Part shown: piece after piece, positions 647 to 51,758 of the stretch
How the letters are laid out: every line of letters begins with the position of its first letter
How positions within the stretch are numbered: position 1 is the stretch's first letter
IMG/VR virus record: IMGVR_UViG_3300042923_000281
Coordinates: 124,001-188,000 of that record
Strand: one strand, 5' to 3'
Length of the DNA stretch: 64,000 nt
Notes under the pieces: generated by a model
Database searches by the model: none
What the model saw: only the letters and a program-made list of their open reading frames with translations
What the model was told of the DNA's origin: nothing
Translations under genes and position numbers: made by a program

Positions 647-676
647 CGGCATAAACGCCGCCCCGAAGGACGGCGT
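647..676 (-). terminator. GC hairpin (UUCG loop) followed by TTATGCCG
   Basis: Minus strand ACGCCGTCC-TTCG-GGGCGGCGT-TTATGCCG right after the stop of 681..1160. Confidence 0.7.
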
Positions 677-1319: not shown

Positions 1320-2486
1320 TTATAGAACGCCTGGACCACCGAGCACAAGCAGCGAGCCTTCAAAGTCCAAGTAGTAGGACCAGTAGGGTGCAACCGTGTT
1401 CTTGTAGAGACGCCCTGGGGTCATCACATCAGGGTTGGTGAACTTCCCTGCATTGACCCACGAGCTTGTGGTAGCGTTCCAACGCCACACCGTTTTATCA
1501 CGGCTGTCGATGATGTCACGCTTGGCCACCGGCACTTGCAGGTTCTTCCACGTAGCTGCTGGTTGAGACACAGCAATGTAACCAATCTGGCACGGAGACT
1601 GGAACATGACCGGGATGTCAACCGTGGCGAAGATAGGGTTCGGCCATGGAGTACCGTCTGCCTGTGTGGCAGTGATTTCCAATTGGTTAGTCTTCTTGCG
1701 AACGACCTTGACCTTGATGCCCGCTTGCAGAGGCCCAGCCGCTGCCCACGTTTGACGAGGAATACCCAACTCCTGAGACCACAACGGAACAGCGCCGTTA
1801 GCAGCGCCTTGGTTATAGTTCACACCGCACCAAATGACTGGTGTTTTGGTTTCGTCGTAGTTGCCCGCTGGGAGCATACCGCCGCCGCTGACCAAGACTG
1901 TCAAGGTGTACTCTCGACCATTGGCTCGCTTGAATGCCGCGCACATGCCGATGGTGTCGTCATCACCACCCGTTGACTTCATGATGGTTTCGAAGGTGTA
2001 TTCTTCGAAACGATCCAAGCCAATCAACCCGATCAGACTGCCTGAGTTGACAGTAGACGACGCACTGTCTGTGGCGCTGTCGTACGCCCAACTGTTCATC
2101 TCAGAGACGTTGTTAGGGAACTGCAAGTTGTTACCGTGACTGATCCGTTGCCACGTGTTGTACACGTCAGCGAATGAAACGGTTTCAGCCTTGAGTGCGT
2201 TGATCGCATCGTCGTTGTCGGCCATGCGGAACTTCAGAAGCACCTCGCCACTGACGAACGACATCGGAGTCCCTTCCTCTTTAAAGAAAGGAAGTTCACC
2301 ACGACGACCATTGACCGTGCCAAGACTCTCTTGAACCACAGCCGATTTAACTTCAGCTAATGTCTTGCCGCCAAGTTTGGCTGAGTCCGTAGCCTGGGCA
2401 GTGGCGTCAAGCTTACTGGAAATCTTTGTACGAATTGCTTTAAGGATGCCATCAAATTTGACAGCCAACTGCGATGGGGTAGCCAT
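1320..2486 (-). CDS. virion/tail-fibre-associated protein with beta-sandwich (lectin-like) C-terminal domain
   Basis: N-terminus (..ISSKLDATAQATDSAKLGG) resembles the N-terminus of fibre 25311..26225; W/G/T-rich beta domain with a GGDDDTIG motif; start chosen at MATPSQL. Confidence 0.6.
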   Translation of the reverse strand: MATPSQLAVKFDGILKAIRTKISSKLDATAQATDSAKLGGKTLAEVKSAVVQESLGTVNGRRGELPFFKEEGTPMSFVSGEVLLKFRMADNDDAINALKAETVSFADVYNTWQRISHGNNLQFPNNVSEMNSWAYDSATDSASSTVNSGSLIGLIGLDRFEEYTFETIMKSTGGDDDTIGMCAAFKRANGREYTLTVLVSGGGMLPAGNYDETKTPVIWCGVNYNQGAANGAVPLWSQELGIPRQTWAAAGPLQAGIKVKVVRKKTNQLEITATQADGTPWPNPIFATVDIPVMFQSPCQIGYIAVSQPAATWKNLQVPVAKRDIIDSRDKTVWRWNATTSSWVNAGKFTNPDVMTPGRLYKNTVAPYWSYYLDFEGSLLVLGGPGVL

Positions 2487-4066: not shown

Positions 4067-4521
4067 TGGTTGGTCTTCTTCGGCAGGATGTTGTTGACGT
4101 TGATGTGGTCACCGTATTCACGCAACTGCGTGTAAATGTAACCGACGGCTTTGTGGTCATCGTCGAGGACCAGGAGCATCAGGCCTTGTTCTTCTTCCGG
4201 CGTGAGTTCCTGGATGACGTGGACTTCGTGGTTGTCGAAGTGACCGATCAGGGATTCGACCTGATCAGTACGCTTGAAGTGATCCGGGTTGGTGATGGCG
4301 CCTTCAGGCAGGTCGTACAAGTACTGACCGATGCCCGCAGTCACACCCAGAGCATAGCGGAAATGCTCCGAGCGTGCAGCGGCCAGCAACACCATCGAGC
4401 GGACCGTGTCGACCACCATGGACTGGATACCCCAGCCCAATGCGTTGTTGTGGTCCGGGGCTTTAGCAACAGCCTCGGTCACAGTGAGTGGATGGTCGAA
4501 CATGATCATTTCATTGCTCAT
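4063..4521 (-). CDS. hypothetical protein
   Basis: Start re-chosen at MSNEMIMF with a GGAG RBS, overlapping the ligase end. Confidence 0.75.
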   Translation of the reverse strand: MSNEMIMFDHPLTVTEAVAKAPDHNNALGWGIQSMVVDTVRSMVLLAAARSEHFRYALGVTAGIGQYLYDLPEGAITNPDHFKRTDQVESLIGHFDNHEVHVIQELTPEEEQGLMLLVLDDDHKAVGYIYTQLREYGDHINVNNILPKKTNQ

Positions 4522-6550
4522 TGGTATCTCCAGTTGCGGTAGAAGTAAGTCCGTTGTCGGTGGACATAATGGTGGTGAGAGAGTTGGGGTTGGTGAACTT
4601 GATCCCATCTTCGATGAAACGCAGTTCCCTGGCCTTCCTGACTTTATCAGGACCGGCACCTACACCAGCAAAGAGGATGTCGGTGTTCTTGCTGACAGAT
4701 TTCGTCAACTTGCCACCTCGTGAAATCACGTCATCTTCCATGGCCCGGCGAGTTAGACCGTCAAAGTCCGATCCACTGACGACCACCGTCTTGCCAGCCA
4801 GGTCTTGAACCTCAGCTTTCGGGATCACAACGTCGGTGTACGTGAAGACGGTGTCCAGTGCATGCAGGTCAGCATCGTTAGCCACGTAGGTCAACATGAT
4901 ACTGGTGGCTACCGCAGGGCCCACGTCGTCCACTTCCTGCAACGTCTTGAAGCTGGCCTTACCCAGTTCACGGAACGAAGGGAATCGTGCTGCCAGAGCC
5001 CGTGCAGTGCTGTCACCGACATCTGGGATGCCCACAGCGCGCAGTGCTTTGTAGAACGGCAGCTTCTTGCAACGGTTCAGGCCGGCAATGATCTTATCAG
5101 TCATCGCTTCGCCAATACCCGCCGCGTAGAAATCCTGCTCACCCAGATAGAACAGCGAACTGAACGACCCCAACGACCCCACAGCAATCAAAGACTCAAC
5201 CGCAGCAGGTCCCAAGTTCTTGACATCGATGCCATCACGGCTCACGAAGTAGGCCATGCGGTTAATCAGCTGGGCTGGGCAGTTGATCAGGTTGGTGCAG
5301 AACAGCTTCACCCCCTCATCATCGCCTTCACCGCGCTTGGTCACCTTGGCACCGCAGCACGGACACTCAACCGGCGTGTGGATCAGCCCATGGTCATCGA
5401 CCCGAAGCGCCAGAATGACACTTTCGATCTTCGGAATCACGTCACCACGACGAGAGACCACCACGGTATCGCCAATGCGCAGGTCAAGACGCTCGATTTC
5501 CTCGAAGTTGTGCAACGTGACACTCGAGATGGTCACACCACACAGGCTCACAGGACGAATCTTCGCTACTGGCGTCAACACACCCGTCCGACCCACTTGC
5601 ACTTCCACACTTTCCAGCACGGTTGTGGCTGTTTGAGCCTCGAACTTGTACGCCACTGCCCAACGAGGGGAAGTAGAACGCTGTCCAAGGGTCGCTCGTT
5701 CGGCAGGATGGATCAGTTTCAGCACCAGACCGTCAATGTCATACCCCAATTCCTTACGGCGCTTGGTAATGTCATTGATTGCTTCGACAATCTTGTCTAA
5801 CTGCCCAGTCAAACCTTTCCAAACAGGCTCGGAGATGTAGAACTTGTCCTGAACCTCCGGTGCAAGGTACGACATCGGGATGGACAGCGGTCCTGCGTCG
5901 GTATGAAGCACCGCGTCATAAGCAATAAAGCGAATGCCCATGCCCTGAAGGCCTTCACCTTCCTTTTTACGAGCCAGTCCAGCGACCATGTTGCGTGGGT
6001 TGGCGTAAATCTTCTTGCCTTGAGCCACTCGCATCTGACACGCTCGGTGAAAGTGGTCGTGCGGGATGATTGCTTCACCCCGAATCTCCACTTTACCCTT
6101 GAAGTTCTCCAGTTGCTCAGGAATGCCTTCAAAGTGAATCGCGTTGTCTGTGATGTCATCGCCAATATCGCCGTCGCCACGAGTCGCAGCGTACTTCAAC
6201 TTGGATTTGTCATACAACAGATCGATGGCCAGCCCGTCCAGCTTCTTTTCCAGCTGAGCATGAGCCGAATAACCCAACGCAGTGACCCAATCGGTCAGCT
6301 CTTCCTCATTGTAGACGTTACCGAGGCTGAGCATGGGCGTCAGGTGCTTGACTTTCTCAAAGCCGCCATTAGAGACGGCCCCGACTTGGTTCAACGGCGA
6401 GAGGGGATCGTCAGTTTCCCCTTCCAGCTCCCGCAACTCTGCTTTGAGGGAGGTGTACACGTCGTCTTCGACGTCTGACTCCCCCTCGTTGTAGTAGAGG
6501 TGGTTCAGACGACTGATCTCTGCTCGCAGAGCTTCGATGCGGTTGTCCAT
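4511..6550 (-). CDS. ligA: NAD-dependent DNA ligase
   Basis: KLDG adenylation motif, EIRGE, PRWAVAYKF, VGRTG, CPCC..C..C Zn finger, HhH repeats, C-terminal BRCT. Confidence 0.97.
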   Translation of the reverse strand: MDNRIEALRAEISRLNHLYYNEGESDVEDDVYTSLKAELRELEGETDDPLSPLNQVGAVSNGGFEKVKHLTPMLSLGNVYNEEELTDWVTALGYSAHAQLEKKLDGLAIDLLYDKSKLKYAATRGDGDIGDDITDNAIHFEGIPEQLENFKGKVEIRGEAIIPHDHFHRACQMRVAQGKKIYANPRNMVAGLARKKEGEGLQGMGIRFIAYDAVLHTDAGPLSIPMSYLAPEVQDKFYISEPVWKGLTGQLDKIVEAINDITKRRKELGYDIDGLVLKLIHPAERATLGQRSTSPRWAVAYKFEAQTATTVLESVEVQVGRTGVLTPVAKIRPVSLCGVTISSVTLHNFEEIERLDLRIGDTVVVSRRGDVIPKIESVILALRVDDHGLIHTPVECPCCGAKVTKRGEGDDEGVKLFCTNLINCPAQLINRMAYFVSRDGIDVKNLGPAAVESLIAVGSLGSFSSLFYLGEQDFYAAGIGEAMTDKIIAGLNRCKKLPFYKALRAVGIPDVGDSTARALAARFPSFRELGKASFKTLQEVDDVGPAVATSIMLTYVANDADLHALDTVFTYTDVVIPKAEVQDLAGKTVVVSGSDFDGLTRRAMEDDVISRGGKLTKSVSKNTDILFAGVGAGPDKVRKARELRFIEDGIKFTNPNSLTTIMSTDNGLTSTATGDTNEQ

Positions 6551-6560
6551 GATGCGACTC

Positions 6561-7019
6561 CTAACTCACTTTCAGGTTTACCATCAGGCGATCGAGTCGG
6601 ATAGCTCGACGCCCTTGGGTAGGATCGCCTCGAACAATGTCGACACTTTGAATAATGGGGTAGGGTGAGGTCAATTGACTGTTATCCAGTCGGTCTCCGC
6701 CATTCCAGAGGACCTTCCCATGTAATACCCACTTTTCATTTTCTTTCACCAGCGCCGATACCTCGAACAGACCGATCTGGCGAGGCTTGAGCTTGCGGTA
6801 GAACTCACCGATGGGTTCATCACCCCAGTCGCGCTTCGGCCAGTTCATGTAGATCGGCATAAAGTCAACCGGCACCAACTCACCAGCGCTTTCGTCGCAG
6901 ATCCCCATGCCATCTGGGAGGCCGATGCTGACGTTACGGTTGTGAGCAGGAGCATTTGCGAATACATCGGCTGCATCGAAGATCGTGATCTCCCTGAACA
7001 GCTGTATTTGTCCCGTCAT
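6561..7019 (-). CDS. hypothetical protein
   Basis: 152 aa ORF in operon. Confidence 0.75.
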   Translation of the reverse strand: MTGQIQLFREITIFDAADVFANAPAHNRNVSIGLPDGMGICDESAGELVPVDFMPIYMNWPKRDWGDEPIGEFYRKLKPRQIGLFEVSALVKENEKWVLHGKVLWNGGDRLDNSQLTSPYPIIQSVDIVRGDPTQGRRAIRLDRLMVNLKVS

Positions 7020-7367: not shown

Positions 7368-7736
7368 TCAGGTCTCGGTTTTCATGAGGACGAAGGTCAG
7401 TCGAGCTTGACCTTCCAAGGATTCGGTAATGAAGTCCACACTGCCATCAGGCTGAGTGAAATTTTCACAACCAACTGCCGTACGATAGGCGCCGTCCATG
7501 CTGAAGAATGTACGGAGGAAGCTCATCGCCACGTGATAGCAGTCAAAATCAGGACCAGGACCCATCCAGCCTACATGAGAGCGGAACAGTTTGGCCTCGT
7601 TGACATCGGTGGTGTATTCTACCATCGGTTTGTTGTCTTTACTGTCACCGAAGGTCTTCAGATACTTCTTCTCTTCGCCTTTGGCTTGGAAGCACACGCG
7701 GGAGTTGTAGCAAGCAGGCAGATTGTTCTGTGTCAT
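7368..7736 (-). CDS. hypothetical protein
   Basis: 122 aa ORF with AGGAG RBS. Confidence 0.75.
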   Translation of the reverse strand: MTQNNLPACYNSRVCFQAKGEEKKYLKTFGDSKDNKPMVEYTTDVNEAKLFRSHVGWMGPGPDFDCYHVAMSFLRTFFSMDGAYRTAVGCENFTQPDGSVDFITESLEGQARLTFVLMKTET

Positions 7737-8796: not shown

Positions 8797-8829
8797 TTGC
8801 CTTATAATTTTTAATTACAATCGGTGAAA

Positions 8830-8856
8830 CGGCATAAAGGCGGGACTAGCCCGCCT
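8830..8856 (-). terminator. hairpin plus TTATGCCG
   Basis: AGGCGGG-CTAGT-CCCGCCT-TTATGCCG. Confidence 0.7.
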
Positions 8857-8860
8857 ATGC

Positions 8861-9271
8861 TCAACGACGATAGCCAAGATCGGCGTGTGGATCATCTTTC
8901 TCTGCCAAGCCTTCAAACGCATTGCTGAAGCCTACTGGCATGGAGGACTTCAATACCCGGACCACGTCGTGACTGGGCTTAGGGCGTGACATCAGCTTCT
9001 TCATCCAGTCCACATTGAAACCGATGAATTCACGTTTGCCTTTGACAGACAACACACCACGACGGACATTGAACCGGTTGGCGTAGCTCTTCATGTTTTC
9101 AACAGGACCGTTCAGAATGGCGATGAAGACCTCGTTCTCCAAGTCCGGCATGAGCAGGTGAGGGAGGGCTTCGATCAGGTGAGTCTCGGTGATCCCTAAG
9201 CCAGCAGCAATCGTTAACGCCTCGTCCTCAGAGTCGGCAATGATGATACTGATACCGTTTTCATTACGCAT
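8861..9271 (-). CDS. hypothetical protein
   Basis: Start at MRNENGISII with AGGAG RBS. Confidence 0.75.
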   Translation of the reverse strand: MRNENGISIIIADSEDEALTIAAGLGITETHLIEALPHLLMPDLENEVFIAILNGPVENMKSYANRFNVRRGVLSVKGKREFIGFNVDWMKKLMSRPKPSHDVVRVLKSSMPVGFSNAFEGLAEKDDPHADLGYRR

Positions 9272-9297
9272 TTGGATGTCTCCTGAGAAATGTCTAT

Positions 9298-9337
9298 CGG
9301 CATAAATGGGCAGCATGAGTTTGAGCCCATGCTGCCC
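9298..9337 (-). terminator. hairpin plus TTTATGCCG
   Basis: GGGCAGCATGGG..CTCATGCTGCCC-ATTTATGCCG. Confidence 0.7.
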
Positions 9338-9482
9338 GGTACAGGCGCCGTTGAAACGTATGCTACTGGCTCCCGCCGTTGCTAAACCGTTTCGGGTTAA
9401 GCGTGTGCTGGATCACCCCCTCACTAGACAGTATCTACTGCCTGTACATACAATAGGATCACCTCGATTAGTTTTTAGCTAC
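9300..9482 (-). ncRNA. candidate small structured RNA with 16S rRNA 3'-end-complementary tracts
   Basis: Lies between the TACATTAC motif (9487-9494) and a terminator; only very short minus-strand ORFs seen; closing stem GTACAGGC/GCCTGTAC; tracts TGAGGGGGTGATCCAGC and GAGGTGATCC. Confidence 0.45.
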
Positions 9483-9486
9483 GAGG

Positions 9487-9494
9487 GTAATGTA
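9487..9494 (-). promoter_or_regulatory. putative early promoter TACATTAC
   Basis: One mismatch to the phiKZ early consensus TATATTAC. Confidence 0.6.
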
Positions 9495-9526
9495 TCGTTT
9501 GAGTAAAATCAAATCCACTATAAACA

Positions 9527-9553
9527 GGGGATACAGGCCACGGCCTGTATCCC
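9527..9553. terminator. strong hairpin in the divergent intergenic region
   Basis: GGGATACAGGCC-AC-GGCCTGTATCCC followed by T-rich sequence on the + strand. Confidence 0.55.
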
Positions 9554-9688
9554 TTCCTTATTTGCTTTATATCTTTTATAGGTACTTACCGTATCAGGGC
9601 ACGCCAAATGATGTGTAGCTGCTCTCTTTAATTCATCTCGATTTATCGAGTGTCAGCCGCTCTTTAAATCCACTTCGGGTATCAAGAC

Positions 9689-10204
9689 ATGTCTGACATT
9701 TCCCTGCTTTCCAAGGACCAAGTACTTGCCTTGGTCAACGAGCAAAACCCGGGCCTGAACCTTACGCACGAGAAAGTCACTTTCGGTGATCCTGTCGCAG
9801 CGTCTGGTGAAAACCCGGAACGTAACACTGAACTGGTCATGACCGGTATCCCGGGCAAGGGCTTCAAGAACACTGCCACCATCCTTTACAACCGGATCGA
9901 CTTGGCAGACTTCGAAGTTCAGATCCCATCGCAGATCCAAGTAGAAGGCGATGTGACCATCCAATCCATTCTGGATGGTTTCAACCTGTTCTACGGGGCG
10001 AACCTGCAACTGAACGACGTGCGTAGCGACCTCACGCTGCCCGGCGATCTGACCAGCACTCCGGAAGACTTCACCCTGATCGCCGCTGCGGGCTCCTACG
10101 CCTACCGTGGTCAGGTGGTCATCAGTATCCAGATGGCTGACCAAGACCTGAACGCTGCCGTCACCAAGAAAGTCCTGGATGGCTTGACGCTCTCCCTGAG
10201 CTAA
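9689..10204 (+). CDS. virion structural paralog (Ig-like tail/baseplate family, DUF7941-like)
   Basis: Family motif RNT.l...g..g.gf.....i.YNRiDL...A..GS.aY.G. Confidence 0.75.
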   Translation: MSDISLLSKDQVLALVNEQNPGLNLTHEKVTFGDPVAASGENPERNTELVMTGIPGKGFKNTATILYNRIDLADFEVQIPSQIQVEGDVTIQSILDGFNLFYGANLQLNDVRSDLTLPGDLTSTPEDFTLIAAAGSYAYRGQVVISIQMADQDLNAAVTKKVLDGLTLSLS

Positions 10205-10282
10205 TGGTGCTGGTAGTTGACCAGAACGCGCACTGGGGCCTTCGGGTCTCAGTGGCATTAGTCTCTTAACCGGGAAAGAATC

Positions 10283-11122
10283 ATGTCAATCTACAGTCAG
10301 TCGCCCGACCAGATGGTGCGCGAACTGATCAACAATGCCAACACCCCTCTCGTTCCCTTCGCTCCAGAGAACTTGACCTTCGGTACGCCCCAAGTTGTAA
10401 CGGGCAATCCTTCTGTCAACGCCACAGTGAAGGTGCGAGGTATCCAGGGTGAGGTCTACGCTGGTCAGGTTGCTATTTCGTACAATCGCTTGGACCTTGG
10501 TGTCCTGTACCGCGGTAACTACCGCCCAGAATTCACGGCGTTGGGTCAATCGACCCTCTATCGTCTATTGCCTGAGATCAACAAGGCCCTCGGCCTGAAC
10601 TTGACGAAGAACGACTTGATTGACGTCGACCTCAAGTTGTTGGAAGAAGGCGATCAGGTCAACCTTGAACTGCGTGCTAAGCCTGGCTCGTTGGCTTACA
10701 CCGGTCTGGCCACGATCTTGTTCAACCGTCGGCAGTTGATGCTCACGGACGTCTTGCCAGTGGAAGCGTTCGAAGAGTTCAAACACGCTGACCCAGTCCT
10801 TGAAGGTTATCAGAGCGCTGGTTTGCTTACTTGGGGGCAGGATTTCACGATCATTGCGCAGTACCTCAAGGTCAACCGTTACGGTAACAACTACAAGGGT
10901 AGCTGGATCGACGAAGCCGGGCTCAGAGCAGGCCTGGCTCAGTATTTCGGCATCGAGAATTGGCCGAGGATTGACACGAGTGCCAACTCCAAGATGACGA
11001 TCAGGGATTACGCCACGAAAGATCACCCGGATGCCAACCGTAACTACCAGCGGGTGGTGGTGCAAACCAGCCTGCGCAGCGACGGGTACTCCGGTACTGC
11101 TTTCTTCCACTATAACGCCTGA
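10283..11122 (+). CDS. virion structural paralog (N-domain plus C-terminal ..HYN domain)
   Basis: YNRLDL and GSLAYTG motifs; C-terminus PDAN..Y.RVVV...G..FFHYN. Confidence 0.75.
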   Translation: MSIYSQSPDQMVRELINNANTPLVPFAPENLTFGTPQVVTGNPSVNATVKVRGIQGEVYAGQVAISYNRLDLGVLYRGNYRPEFTALGQSTLYRLLPEINKALGLNLTKNDLIDVDLKLLEEGDQVNLELRAKPGSLAYTGLATILFNRRQLMLTDVLPVEAFEEFKHADPVLEGYQSAGLLTWGQDFTIIAQYLKVNRYGNNYKGSWIDEAGLRAGLAQYFGIENWPRIDTSANSKMTIRDYATKDHPDANRNYQRVVVQTSLRSDGYSGTAFFHYNA

Positions 11123-11135
11123 TCGGAGATGACTC

Positions 11136-11984
11136 ATGTCTCTTTATAAGAACCCCGTCACGACGCTTTTGAACGTCGTCGGGAGTTACAACGGGATCAC
11201 GCTCGATCCGGCTGACTTCGACTTCATCGATCCTCGGCCGAACACCAGCGGCAAGCATCCTGAGCAAAACTCCATCGTCACCATCAAGGCCAACAACGCC
11301 TTTGCCCCGTATCAGGGCGAGACCGTGGTGTACTACAACCGTCTGGACTTGGCTGACTTGGCGAAACTCGTCACGTTAACCATGAAGGCCCCAAGCGTCA
11401 CCAACTCCCACGACCTCCTGCCGTTCCTGAATGACCGTTTCGGTCTGAACCTGGAAGAGTCGGATCTGGAACTGGTTGATGCTGAAGACATGACCGATTA
11501 CAAGACCGTGCAACTGACGGCTGTACCGGGCAGTCTGGGTTGGATCGGCACTGTGTCCATTTCGGTGGCACAAGGTGACATCCCGCTGACCAACTACCTG
11601 ACGACCACTGCACTCAACGGTCTGAACTACCCAACGCCGTACGCTACCCTGCCGTTTGCGCAGATGTACAGCTACTGGCGTGACTTCTCGGCTCACGTGA
11701 ATTACCTGAAGACCATCACGGCTGGTCAGGCGATCCCACAAGAGCTGGCTGACATCCTCTCCAGCATCACTGGCGACGCATGGTTCCGTACTGGCTACCA
11801 TGAGTTCAGTCTGGGCGGTGCTCAGGTTGTGTGGGCTGGTAAAGCGGCTGACAACGGTCTGATGAACCCGTCGTACGACTACGGCATTCAGGTCCGTCTG
11901 AACCACGATGATGCGTTCGGTATCACTGGCGACTTGATCATTCACTTCAGCGATCCGGTTGACCCGTTCGCTCAGCCAGCGTGA
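11136..11984 (+). CDS. virion structural paralog
   Basis: YNRLDL, GSLGWIG, LNGLNYP motifs. Confidence 0.75.
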   Translation: MSLYKNPVTTLLNVVGSYNGITLDPADFDFIDPRPNTSGKHPEQNSIVTIKANNAFAPYQGETVVYYNRLDLADLAKLVTLTMKAPSVTNSHDLLPFLNDRFGLNLEESDLELVDAEDMTDYKTVQLTAVPGSLGWIGTVSISVAQGDIPLTNYLTTTALNGLNYPTPYATLPFAQMYSYWRDFSAHVNYLKTITAGQAIPQELADILSSITGDAWFRTGYHEFSLGGAQVVWAGKAADNGLMNPSYDYGIQVRLNHDDAFGITGDLIIHFSDPVDPFAQPA

Positions 11985-11992
11985 GGTGAGTC

Positions 11993-12796
11993 ATGGACGG
12001 ACGTGATCTGATTATCCAGATGGTCAACGAGCAGAACACTCTGTATCGGCCGATCACGCTGGACAACGTGGCGATGTCGCTGCCTGTAAAGAAAGGACAG
12101 AACGATCCGCGTAACACCGGGGTGACCCTCAGTGGCGTACACGGTAAGGGCTACAAAGGTCAGACGGAGATCTTCTACAACCGTCACGACTTGCCTGAGC
12201 TGTTTGGTGAAGCGGGCATCACGCCTAACCTTCGTCACAACGCTGAGATCACTCCAGCCTGGATCATCGACAAGTTGAACACCAAGTACGGCCTGTACCT
12301 TGAGGCCACGGACTTGAACAACATCGATGTCCCTATCTTCGACCAATTGGAAACTACCAAGCCCATCGAGATCGTCGTCAAAGACAACTCGTGGAACTGG
12401 GTCGGGACCATTACCCTCGAAATGACCTACGGCAACCCATTACTGGAAACCGTGGTCTTGGTACAGCTCCTGCCGATCCTGGAACACCCCACGGATCACA
12501 AAGAGCTTCGAGGTCGGAAGTCCGGGTACATGTGCACGTACAACTTCGACTTCACAGCCTATAAAGCTGACCTGCAACGTGACCCGAAGACTGGCCGTTG
12601 GGCTAACTTCGACTTGGTCATGGCCGCAGGCGCCAAAGCAGGTTTGCCCGCATGGGGTAATGCAGGCGGGATCGTCGACCTCCCAACCAGCGCAATGCCT
12701 GAAGCCAACCCGAAGTTTCAACGGGTGATGGTGCAGAGCTACGCGACCGGTGGTGTGGTAGGTCCGATCTTATTCCACTACGACCTGGACTGGTGA
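11993..12796 (+). CDS. virion structural paralog
   Basis: RNTGV..GKGYKG..YNRHDL; PEANPKFQRV..FHYD. Confidence 0.75.
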   Translation: MDGRDLIIQMVNEQNTLYRPITLDNVAMSLPVKKGQNDPRNTGVTLSGVHGKGYKGQTEIFYNRHDLPELFGEAGITPNLRHNAEITPAWIIDKLNTKYGLYLEATDLNNIDVPIFDQLETTKPIEIVVKDNSWNWVGTITLEMTYGNPLLETVVLVQLLPILEHPTDHKELRGRKSGYMCTYNFDFTAYKADLQRDPKTGRWANFDLVMAAGAKAGLPAWGNAGGIVDLPTSAMPEANPKFQRVMVQSYATGGVVGPILFHYDLDW

Positions 12797-12826
12797 TTCC
12801 TGTCCTTTCTTGAGAAGGTTTAGCTC

Positions 12827-13831
12827 ATGGCTATCTATAGCAAAACGACCAAGCAGATGATGGTCGATCTGATTAACGCAGGGAATCCGCAACTGCCATT
12901 CCCGATCAACGAGACGGACTTCGAGTTCGGTCTGCCGGAAGTCATCGCTGACCCAGGCAATGGCCACAACACTCGCATCCGGATCACTGCGAAACCGAAC
13001 ACCAACTACGTCGGCAACGTACAGCTTACCTATCGTCGTCTGGACGTGGGCCGTATCTTCCGCAACATGACGCTGGAAGTGTCTCGCTGGGTTGCCAACA
13101 CCGGCGCCAACGGTAGCCCTCTGATTCTGCTGAGTTCGCTGTACCCGCTTTATAGCGAGAAGTACGGTTTCAACTTCGCAGTGGGTGAATGGGGCGACGG
13201 TAACTTGAGTGGCCTCAATGGTATCCGCGGTGACGTGTTTAACATCGCGCCGATTGCCAACAACTTGGCTTTCGTGGGTAACGTGCAGGGCAAGTGGACC
13301 ATCGGTGAACGTACGCTGGAATCGCTACTGTCTGTAGACGTTGTTGCAGGTCGTCGCTACCCAGGCGGTAATGACTTCGTGACTCCGGGCCACAAGTACT
13401 GGGTCACCCCAGACGGCTTCGACATGGACTTCTCGGCATTCAAGGACACGCTGGAATCGGGTGTTGTGGCCACAGGCTACGCTGGCGGTATCCGTGCTAA
13501 CGTGTACGTGGGCGACAACTACGCTGACGGTAGCCAACCAATTCGTCAGATCATCGAGAACAACATTCTCAAGACGCTGAAGAACCGCAATGGCGATTTC
13601 TACACCATTGTAACGGCTGGCGGTCCTGCGGCTGTCACCGAAGCCATGACCACGCCATTCCGGTTGAACGGTGCGTACTTCCGTCGCTATGCCCTCCCGC
13701 ATGCTGACGTGCCAGAAGCCAACTCCGAGTTCTACAACCGTTGCTTGGTCATCAGTGTGAATGACGCCTTCGGTGGTCTGGGCCAGCGTGACTGGGGCAC
13801 TGGTCGCATCCTTCTCCACTACAACGTCTAA
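12827..13831 (+). CDS. virion structural paralog
   Basis: YRRLDV; LP..VPEAN..YNR.LVI...GRILLHYNV. Confidence 0.75.
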   Translation: MAIYSKTTKQMMVDLINAGNPQLPFPINETDFEFGLPEVIADPGNGHNTRIRITAKPNTNYVGNVQLTYRRLDVGRIFRNMTLEVSRWVANTGANGSPLILLSSLYPLYSEKYGFNFAVGEWGDGNLSGLNGIRGDVFNIAPIANNLAFVGNVQGKWTIGERTLESLLSVDVVAGRRYPGGNDFVTPGHKYWVTPDGFDMDFSAFKDTLESGVVATGYAGGIRANVYVGDNYADGSQPIRQIIENNILKTLKNRNGDFYTIVTAGGPAAVTEAMTTPFRLNGAYFRRYALPHADVPEANSEFYNRCLVISVNDAFGGLGQRDWGTGRILLHYNV

Positions 13832-13842
13832 GGGCAGGTGCC

Positions 13843-14721
13843 ATGACTATTCATTTCAACTCCAAGCAGAGTTTGGTGAACTACATCAACGCTGCTAACA
13901 GTTCACCACTGACCGTGGATGAGCTGGACTTTGGTACACCGCAGCCCACAGCAGGGACGTGGCGTGAAGGGTTGGTCAATGCCAACACCGCTATCAAGAT
14001 CACTGCTAAAGAAGCCTCGGTGTTCCAAGGTTCTCGCGTGATCTGCTACGACCGCCTGAACCTGCCGGATCTTTCGACCCTGGCCAACGGGCTGTCGGTC
14101 AAGTGCTACCAGCCTGCGACCAACTTCGACGTGCTGCCTGCGTTGTTCCGCCGTTACGGGATTGTGCTGAGTAAGGAAGACTTCATCGAAGAGCCTTTCG
14201 CTCACGATGGTGCTAACCCCACTCCGTGCGTGTTCAAAGCCAAGCCAGGTGCTATCGGCTGGACAGGTCAACTGACCGTCATGTCCCAGTCGGGCTCTGC
14301 GGTACTGGGCCAGCACTTGACTCAAGCAGCTCTGCCGGGGCTGAACTACCCAGTGACCGGTGACGGTTCTCAAGGTTCGGCACTGACTTACCTCTACGGG
14401 TATGATTTCACAGCGTACAAGTCGACGCTGGAGAACTACCAAGTGGGCACCAAGTTGGGTGCGGCTGATACAGCGCTTCTGGCTGCGATCAAGGCGATTG
14501 ACACCAACGCCGGTAAGTCGCTGTGGAACTTGGACCCGGCAAGCACTGCGTGGTCTCTGGAGGGCGCTGAGGTTGTCTACAGCGGTATCAACTCCAATGT
14601 CCTGCCAACTAACCAGTCGTACAAGTACGCACTCGGTCTGTTGCTCAAGGCGACCAACATCACGCCTCCGGGCGTGTGCTACCTCCACTACGACGATCCG
14701 TTCGATCCGAACGAGGTGTGA
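13843..14721 (+). CDS. virion structural paralog
   Basis: YDRLNL, GAIGWTG, LPGLNYP; C-terminus YLHYDDPFDP similar to 11136..11984. Confidence 0.75.
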   Translation: MTIHFNSKQSLVNYINAANSSPLTVDELDFGTPQPTAGTWREGLVNANTAIKITAKEASVFQGSRVICYDRLNLPDLSTLANGLSVKCYQPATNFDVLPALFRRYGIVLSKEDFIEEPFAHDGANPTPCVFKAKPGAIGWTGQLTVMSQSGSAVLGQHLTQAALPGLNYPVTGDGSQGSALTYLYGYDFTAYKSTLENYQVGTKLGAADTALLAAIKAIDTNAGKSLWNLDPASTAWSLEGAEVVYSGINSNVLPTNQSYKYALGLLLKATNITPPGVCYLHYDDPFDPNEV

Positions 14722-14767
14722 GTAAACGGCCCTAGGTAACTGGGGCCATCACAAAGGAAGACTGAAG

Positions 14768-15631
14768 ATGTCGTCTTACTACTCAAAACCTCAGGTCGAA
14801 CTGTTACTGAAGCTGATCAACGAGTCCAACCCAGGGCTGTTAGAGCTTCGTGACTTGGTGAACACTCGCCTCGGTGTGCCATTTGTACGCACGCCTGCTG
14901 CCGGTGAGATCCAGAACACGTCGTTGGAACTGTACGCACAACCCGGGTCATTCTACATCGGCAAGAAGATCGTTCACTATCGGCGAATCGATCTGAGCAA
15001 GCTGTTTGCCAACATGACGTTGGACATCGAGTACTGGGCTCCGGGCAACTTGCCTAAAGCCACGTGGATCGATTTGATCAACAAGAAGTACGGTCTGGCC
15101 TTGGTCGATGCTGACATGGCAGGCTACGGGGACATGGGCGAAACGACGTACGTCTTGAACCTGGCGGGTACTTCGCTGGGCTACAATGGTACGTTGCGGG
15201 TTCGTTGGACACGTGGCAAACGGGCCATGGACCAGATCTTGACAGTGGATCGGTACGCCGGTCTGTATTGGGATAGTTCCTATGTGCAAGGGAAGCCACT
15301 CATGACACCAGTGAACTTCAGTCTGGACTACAGTCGGTTCTTCAACATCGACACCATCACAAACGGGATCACGCTGAACAACGCAGGTGCGTACTACAGT
15401 GAGATCAAAACGATTGTGGACTGGTTCAACAAGTGCGCCGGTCTGGCCTTGGATCTGGGGGTCGATCACACGTTGCCAAATGGGCTCAAGGGCTTGACCA
15501 TGTCTCGCTTCACATTGCCCAACGTCAACGTGCCTGAAGCCAACGCTGCCAAGTTCAACCGTGTCTTGGTGATCTCCAGTCGGACCACCAGTTGGTTCGG
15601 TGGCAAGATCCTGCTGCACTACAACGTCTAA
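14768..15631 (+). CDS. virion structural paralog
   Basis: YRRIDL; VPEANAAKFNRVLVI..GKILLHYNV, closest to 12827..13831. Confidence 0.75.
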   Translation: MSSYYSKPQVELLLKLINESNPGLLELRDLVNTRLGVPFVRTPAAGEIQNTSLELYAQPGSFYIGKKIVHYRRIDLSKLFANMTLDIEYWAPGNLPKATWIDLINKKYGLALVDADMAGYGDMGETTYVLNLAGTSLGYNGTLRVRWTRGKRAMDQILTVDRYAGLYWDSSYVQGKPLMTPVNFSLDYSRFFNIDTITNGITLNNAGAYYSEIKTIVDWFNKCAGLALDLGVDHTLPNGLKGLTMSRFTLPNVNVPEANAAKFNRVLVISSRTTSWFGGKILLHYNV

Positions 15632-21371: not shown

Positions 21372-21406
21372 AGAGCGAGGGCCATCGGCCCTCGCTCTTT
21401 ATGCCG
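21372..21406 (+). terminator. hairpin plus TTATGCCG between convergent genes
   Basis: AGAGCGAGGGCC-ATC-GGCCCTCGCTCT-TTATGCCG. Confidence 0.8.
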
Positions 21407-44072: not shown

Positions 44073-44103
44073 CGGCATAAAGGCGAGAGCCGAAGCCCTC
44101 GCC
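44073..44103 (-). terminator. hairpin plus TTTATGCCG
   Basis: GGCGAGGGC-TTCG-GCTCTCGCC-TTTATGCCG. Confidence 0.75.
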
Positions 44104-51732: not shown

Positions 51733-51758
51733 GGCATAAAGCGGTGGGCGGACCCACC
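51733..51758 (-). terminator. hairpin plus TTTATGCC
   Basis: GGTGGG-TCCG-CCCACC-GC-TTTATGCC. Confidence 0.6.

Follow-up and report, generated by a model that had tools for sequence, protein, structure and literature searches.

A small structured RNA family whose near-invariant 14-nt tract is complementary to the 3' tail of 16S rRNA is encoded by phiKZ-related jumbo phages of Pseudomonas, and pairing of this tract with the anti-SD of host 30S subunits is inferred to be its most likely mode of action (probability about 0.55). The member studied here lies at 9299-9450 on the minus strand of a 64,000-nt stretch of IMG/VR record IMGVR_UViG_3300042923_000281 (positions 124,001 to 188,000), referred to in full as the window, where it forms a stand-alone gene for a predicted non-coding RNA of about 147 nt. 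An earlier note, made from the sequence alone, had proposed a minus-strand unit of about 180 nt with two tracts matching the 16S tail, the octamer TACATTAC upstream, and a role as an early RNA that binds or invades 30S subunits. The observation itself held, as every sequence statement was confirmed, while the interpretation was only partly supported. The features of the locus are as follows.

9487-9494, minus strand: TACATTAC, an early-promoter-like octamer 40 nt upstream of the TATG, at most an optional second promoter
9456-9465, minus strand: second tract, GAGGUGAUCC, upstream of the predicted +1 and probably not part of the RNA
9447-9450, minus strand: promoter core TATG, with the G at 9447 as predicted +1 and first base of stem P1
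9339-9447, minus strand: structured core of the RNA (109 nt), in which P1 encloses P2, the single-stranded tract, and P3 with P4 nested inside it
9440-9447, minus strand: P1 5' strand, GUACAGGC, pairing with 9339-9346 (GCCUGUAC)
9430-9439, minus strand: P2 hairpin, stacked directly on P1
9408-9421, minus strand: near-invariant tract, AGGGGGUGAUCCAG; with its flanks (9407-9423) it gives 17 contiguous pairs to the 16S 3' end
9388-9393, minus strand: P3 5' strand, GAAACG, pairing with 9353-9358 (CGUUUC)
9362-9382, minus strand: P4 hairpin, capped by the GNRA tetraloop GGGA (9371-9374)
9299-9337, minus strand: terminator, a 10-bp GC-rich hairpin (9308-9337) followed by AUUUAUGCC

The plus strand at 9407-9423 reads GCTGGATCACCCCCTCA, a 15/17 match to GCTGGATCACCTCCTTA in which both differences are T>C, such that the minus-strand transcript UGAGGGGGUGAUCCAGC can pair with all 17 terminal bases of a GCUGGAUCACCUCCUUA tail, two of them as G.U. 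A match with 2 or fewer mismatches is expected 0.01 times in the window and occurs once, while the expectation with 3 or fewer mismatches is 0.11. By comparison, the longest SD-like runs upstream of 66 non-overlapping ORFs in the window are 3-8 nt, with a mode of 5. The 8-bp stem, the hairpin followed by TTTATGCCG (9298-9306, minus strand), TACATTAC, and the second tract, GAGGTGATCC, are all present as the note had described, and no minus-strand ORF of 20 aa or more lies inside 9331-9494. ARAGORN found no tRNA or tmRNA gene in the window, and Rfam 15 gave no match in the window at gathering thresholds, only chance-level hits in 9200-9700 at E up to 10, and nothing at the RNA in five homologous loci.

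To determine if the element is conserved, window positions 8800-9700 were compared by BLAST with 50,697 phage records, and only one similar stretch was found. Bases 9339-9457 (119 nt) are 89% identical to an intergenic piece of Pseudomonas phage pPa_SNUABM_DT01, although the flanks do not align and the neighboring proteins are unrelated. A weak hit in PhiPA3 turned out to be a true homolog, and its use as a query revealed copies in phiKZ (NC_004629.1, 212855-212970, plus strand), 201phi2-1 (NC_010821.1, 229023-229138, plus strand), PA1C, and some 60 records of their relatives, always in unannotated gaps. Pattern scans added IMG/VR and metagenome jumbo-phage contigs, and a covariance model then found more distant copies in Noxifer and Psa21, just upstream of their gp203-type helicase. 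In all, 25 distinct homologs were collected, all in phiKZ-related jumbo phages of Pseudomonas (phiKZ, PhiPA3, 201phi2-1, Psa21, Noxifer, DT01-like), and the isolated hosts are P. aeruginosa, P. chlororaphis, P. syringae, and P. fluorescens. The window phage is DT01-like, with one virion protein 75% identical to DT01 and about 29% identical to phiKZ and to phiKZ-like phages of other hosts. Its relatedness to phiKZ rests on this virion protein; no phiKZ nvRNAP or helicase genes were found in the 64-kb window.

Other searches yielded no further members. Scans of metagenome and genome contigs with the pattern AGGCNCCGT...CTGGATCACCCC returned 90 and 72 loci, respectively, but about 30 or more are expected by chance, and nhmmer kept only jumbo-phage contigs and no bacterial genome, indicating that most metagenome hits and all bacterial-genome hits were chance. 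Among the collected loci, those labeled L040, L186, and L007:8618-8771 are likewise chance hits. A search of IMG/VR for an enterobacterial-type tract (AGGRGGTGATCCAAC) gave only chance hits among the first 100 of at least 108 loci. No homolog was seen in the neighborhoods of the gp203-type helicase in Xanthomonas RTH11, Ralstonia RP12, Erwinia Desertfox, E. coli Goslar, or Pseudomonas EL and OBP, and in the first four no long anti-SD complement was present; whole genomes were not scanned, so absence is not proven. As all known hosts are Pseudomonas, co-variation of the tract with a different 16S tail was not assessed. The earlier note had proposed that the tracts and the closing stem be examined in related jumbo phages, and had listed absence of the tracts from close relatives as evidence against its reading. 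When this was done, the 17-nt tract proved to contain the most conserved feature of the family and the closing stem was found to covary, whereas the second tract is not conserved, as close relatives read GGGCGATCC, TCGAAATCC, or AGACAATCC at this position and DT01 has nothing similar.

Plain MAFFT alignment followed by RNAalifold recovered only P1, because the variable helices were misaligned. A covariance model was therefore built from seven close copies with a hand-drawn structure, and all 25 copies were realigned to it. Of 594 cells, 92.9% are standard pairs, and 22 of 24 pairs show compensatory changes on both sides. None of 500 shuffles reached any of these measures, and sliding the 3' partners lowered pairing to 25-45% (a 23-sequence version was also counted). 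While the alignment was fitted to the model, and the percentages therefore lean toward it, the variety of pair types is large. In P1, 6 of 8 pairs change on both sides and 99% of cells are paired. All 3 modeled pairs of P2 covary, and relatives have UUCG or GUAA loops and longer stems here. All 6 pairs of P3 covary, reading GAAACG/CGUUUC, GGAACG/CGUUCC, GGGACG/CGUCCC, GAUAC/GUAUC, GGGGU/ACCCC, GACUGC/GCAGUC, and others. All 7 stem pairs of P4 covary, and its loop is GGGA, GAGA, GUGA, or GCGA in nearly all homologs (phiKZ reads AGGA, and some have an extra A). The minimum-energy fold of the whole 149 nt reproduces P1, P3, P4, and the terminator. The strand is indicated by 25 G.U as opposed to 7 A.C cells, and by loops that read as GNRA and UUCG tetraloops on the minus strand only. 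A 1-nt indel relative to DT01 breaks every reading frame and rules out a conserved one.

Immediately 5' of P1 the window reads TATG, and phiKZ late promoters are 5'-TATG-3' with the G as +1, a motif necessary for the non-virion polymerase in vitro (PMC4666361). All DT01/window-type copies keep (T/A)TATG, as TTGTATG, TTATATG, or TCTTATG, while the phiKZ-type copies have TATAG. PhiPA3 and PA1C also match the middle-promoter motif AAanTTACc, expected at about -24 (PMC4666361), with AAACTTAC and AAGATTAC, respectively, at -26 to -19. These are sequence matches only, without expression data, and by promoter type the RNA does not fit the note's designation as an early transcript. Nor is TACATTAC the conserved promoter, since it is present in the window and in the loci labeled L005 and L008 but replaced in L010 and L025, and the phiKZ-type TCTATATTAC motifs lie elsewhere, downstream of the RNA's terminator. 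In phiKZ (locus L012, about 2290-2350, minus strand) and Psa21 (locus L189, about 7690-7730, minus strand), this early-promoter-like motif separates the terminator from the next gene, so that gene has its own promoter. In six loci (L006, L007, L009, L017, L021, and L027), a conserved small hairpin, CCCUACAUUGUAGRGG, followed by a purine-rich SD-like run (GAGGUGA or GAGGAGA) lies about 30 nt upstream of the TATG, with no role assigned.

Downstream, each copy has a GC-rich hairpin of different sequence followed by (U)UUAUGCC or a close variant, and the window copy ends in a hairpin plus UUUAUGCC. In the window, TTTATGCC occurs 7 times as compared to 0.82 expected, at 648-655(-), 8831-8838(-), 9299-9306(-), 21398-21405(+), 44074-44081(-), and 51733-51740(-), and also at 6856-6863(-). 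Six of the seven directly follow a strong GC-rich hairpin, so this looks like a phage-specific terminator tail, and relatives carry it too. Neighboring genes, both upstream and downstream, share no similarity between lineages, and the orientation relative to the gp203-type helicase differs between PhiPA3 and PA1C. The conserved unit is therefore independent, and is not the leader of a particular gene. A 13-bp perfect hairpin at 9526-9555, which scores as a terminator on both strands, lies between the RNA gene and the divergent plus-strand gene cluster.

The tract, AGG(G/A)GGUGAUCCAG, is complementary to the last 14 nt of 16S rRNA (16-21 nt with its flanks) and is fixed at 13 of 14 positions. 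It is identical in 23 of 25 homologs, although the rest of the RNA is about 60% identical between the window type and the phiKZ type; the other two, Noxifer and Psa21, which are the two most divergent copies, have AGGAGGUGAUCCAG, with the perfect SD core GGAGG. Tracts were compared with the 16S end UGCGGCUGGAUCACCUCCUUA, which is the complement of the universal reverse primer AAGGAGGTGATCCAGCCGCA used on P. aeruginosa plus the terminal A read directly in E. coli rrsH. The phiKZ-type tract UUAAGGGGGUGAUCCAGUCG is nearly the RNA version of this primer, but here it is a natural, phage-encoded sequence embedded in a folded RNA. Every copy gives 16-21 contiguous pairs, and for the 23 copies folded the predicted duplex energy is -33 to -38 kcal/mol. 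Among 16 distinct variants of tract plus flanks, positions inside the block change only between G and A opposite U (two positions) and between C and U opposite G, with exceptions at the two 5'-most pairs, where C faces A1542 in three copies and U1541 in one. Immediately outside the block A, C, and U all occur, including transversions. This is the pattern expected when the partner is fixed, and target complementarity has thus been maintained through evolution. The invariant UGAUCCAG and variable bases follow the tract, with no AUG, GUG, or UUG 4-12 nt after it in any of the 25 copies.

The best-supported reading is that of an mRNA mimic, in which the RNA, probably transcribed by the phage's own RNA polymerase from a late-type promoter (middle-type in the PhiPA3/PA1C copies), displays an orphan "super Shine-Dalgarno" between P2 and P3 and pairs in trans with the anti-SD tail of host 30S subunits, which would occupy, tether, or re-programme ribosomes in the middle-to-late phase of infection. 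While the gene anatomy, fold, strand, conservation, and complementarity are demonstrated by the sequence comparisons, transcription, binding to 30S subunits, and the consequence of binding are inferences, and neither expression nor binding was measured here. Existence of the non-coding RNA family is considered nearly certain, and the probability given above applies to 16S pairing as the function of the tract. Several points argue against a simple sponge. A G.U wobble in the middle of the SD core is kept in 23 of 25 copies instead of the perfect A, which a pure affinity model does not explain. In unconstrained folds the GGG(U) part of the tract often pairs with the conserved ACC(C) just 5' of P3 (9393-9397 with 9415-9418, minus strand), giving a mean unpaired probability of 0.3-0.6, and this could be self-masking of the tract. 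Pairs beyond about 13 nt involve the 3' strand of helix 45, which is not free in mature 30S subunits and would have to open, and the "invasion" suggested by the note was not examined. A sponge for the anti-SD would also hit the phage's own SD-led mRNAs, so the benefit to the phage is unclear. The outcome of pairing, which the present data do not distinguish, could be sequestration, a shift in which mRNAs initiate, protection of the tail, or tethering of subunits through the P1-P4 body. A more far-reaching version, somewhat less likely than not, is a dedicated "ribosome-docking" RNA that clamps the anti-SD tail in mid-to-late infection, with the folded body blocking, tethering (for example near the phage nucleus), or re-programming those ribosomes. 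This would be a counterpart, for translation, of what 6S RNA does to RNA polymerase, and the first phage RNA known to target rRNA directly.

The main alternative, possible but unlikely, is that the invariant tract of a structured phage RNA serves another partner, such as a phage or host protein, another RNA, or the RNA's own tertiary core, with the 16S complementarity being incidental. Partial pairing of the tract with ACC(C) in predicted folds, the conserved wobble, and a multi-helix fold with a GNRA loop that resembles protein- or ligand-binding RNAs are consistent with this view. However, a 13/14 or 14/14 complement to the functional single-stranded tail of 16S is expected only about 0.01 times per window, and the substitutions within and next to the tract are those that keep 16S pairing (apart from the exceptions at the two 5'-most pairs), including G to A at the center, which would break a G-C pair with ACCC. 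A cis-acting 5' leader or attenuator of the downstream gene (8861-9271 in the window), controlled by ribosome loading or premature termination at the hairpin, is improbable. In most genomes a co-oriented gene follows, in the window no separate promoter is visible between the terminator and the SD at about 9280, and many phiKZ ncRNA candidates are 5'UTR-derived by premature termination (PMC10914365). Yet the downstream genes are unrelated between lineages, the next gene is convergent in PA1C, and the early-promoter-like motif intervenes in phiKZ and Psa21.

The remaining readings are very unlikely. Transcription of the plus strand would yield a mimic of the 16S tail that binds the SD sequences of mRNAs, and this strand carries the 16S-like sequence itself and a sigma-70-like TAGACA-18-TACAAT, but the G.U bias and the tetraloops favor the minus strand. 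The tract is a very strong SD-like sequence, and short ORFs (MYRQ, MYVQAVDTV) start near the 5' end in the window; translation of these micro-peptides had been named in the note as a reading that would overturn its own, but the ORFs lie upstream of the tract, are not conserved, and lack the ATG in the phiKZ-type copies. A DNA-level element, such as a promoter cluster, an origin, or a mobile repeat, would fit conservation between genomes whose flanks differ, but there is a single copy in the window, and compensatory changes that preserve RNA helices, strand-specific G.U pairs, and tetraloops are not expected of a DNA site. Derivation from a captured 16S fragment was also rejected, as the resemblance beyond the tail (CAAGG, GCCGUAG) lies in P1 and in variable positions and is not conserved.

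The family shares features with several known systems. Shine-Dalgarno/anti-Shine-Dalgarno pairing in translation initiation regions uses the same partner and the same core (GGAGG or GGGGG followed by UGAUCC), but the pairing here spans 16-21 nt rather than 3-8 nt, lacks a following start codon, and sits in a conserved folded RNA that ends at its own terminator. 6S RNA, an abundant structured RNA, follows the same logic by mimicking an open promoter and sequestering RNA polymerase, but the proposed target here is the ribosome, and there is no sequence or fold relationship. Ribosome-associated non-coding RNAs, such as tRNA fragments that bind small subunits and compete with mRNA in archaea and yeast, also act directly on the small subunit in trans, but are processing fragments with no extended rRNA complementarity, whereas this is a dedicated phage gene with a covarying fold and an anti-SD complement. 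ncRNA candidates reported for phiKZ and 201phi2-1 by ONT-cappable-seq (PMC10914365; PMC11512511) come from the same phages and have the same gene style of phage promoter, short transcript, and terminator, conserved between genera. However, the conserved sRNA described there (sRNA005) lies at a different locus, upstream of the tail gene gp182/gp277. Literature searches gave no description of the family, and the main texts of the phiKZ and 201phi2-1 transcriptome, Grad-seq, and antisense papers mention neither the gp203/gp204 locus nor any 16S complementarity, although the transcript may still be listed among unnamed 5'UTR candidates in the supplementary TSS and ncRNA tables, which this comparison did not cover.

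If the RNA docks on the anti-SD, it represents a new way for a virus to take hold of the bacterial translation machinery, as an RNA rather than a protein, acting on rRNA rather than on mRNA. It would bear on how translation of exported phage mRNAs is organized or prioritized in nucleus-forming jumbo phages, and on how host translation is handled when the phage does not use the host RNA polymerase. The family is compact (about 110 nt), with a near-invariant 14-nt handle and well-studied model members (phiKZ, PhiPA3, 201phi2-1) for which transcriptomes, antisense knock-down, and genetics already exist, so the hypothesis can be tested directly. Even if the ribosome link fails, this is a previously uncatalogued, strongly covarying ncRNA family present in all the Pseudomonas phiKZ-like lineages where a copy was found.

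Elsewhere in the window, seven tandem paralogous ORFs of 171-334 aa, 23-33% identical pairwise and whose function was not examined, occupy 9689-15631 on the plus strand. An NAD-dependent DNA ligase (PHROG 3869, E = 3e-169) is encoded at 4511-6550 on the minus strand, and Psa21 and RP12 also carry a ligase within about 8 kb of their gp203-type helicase.
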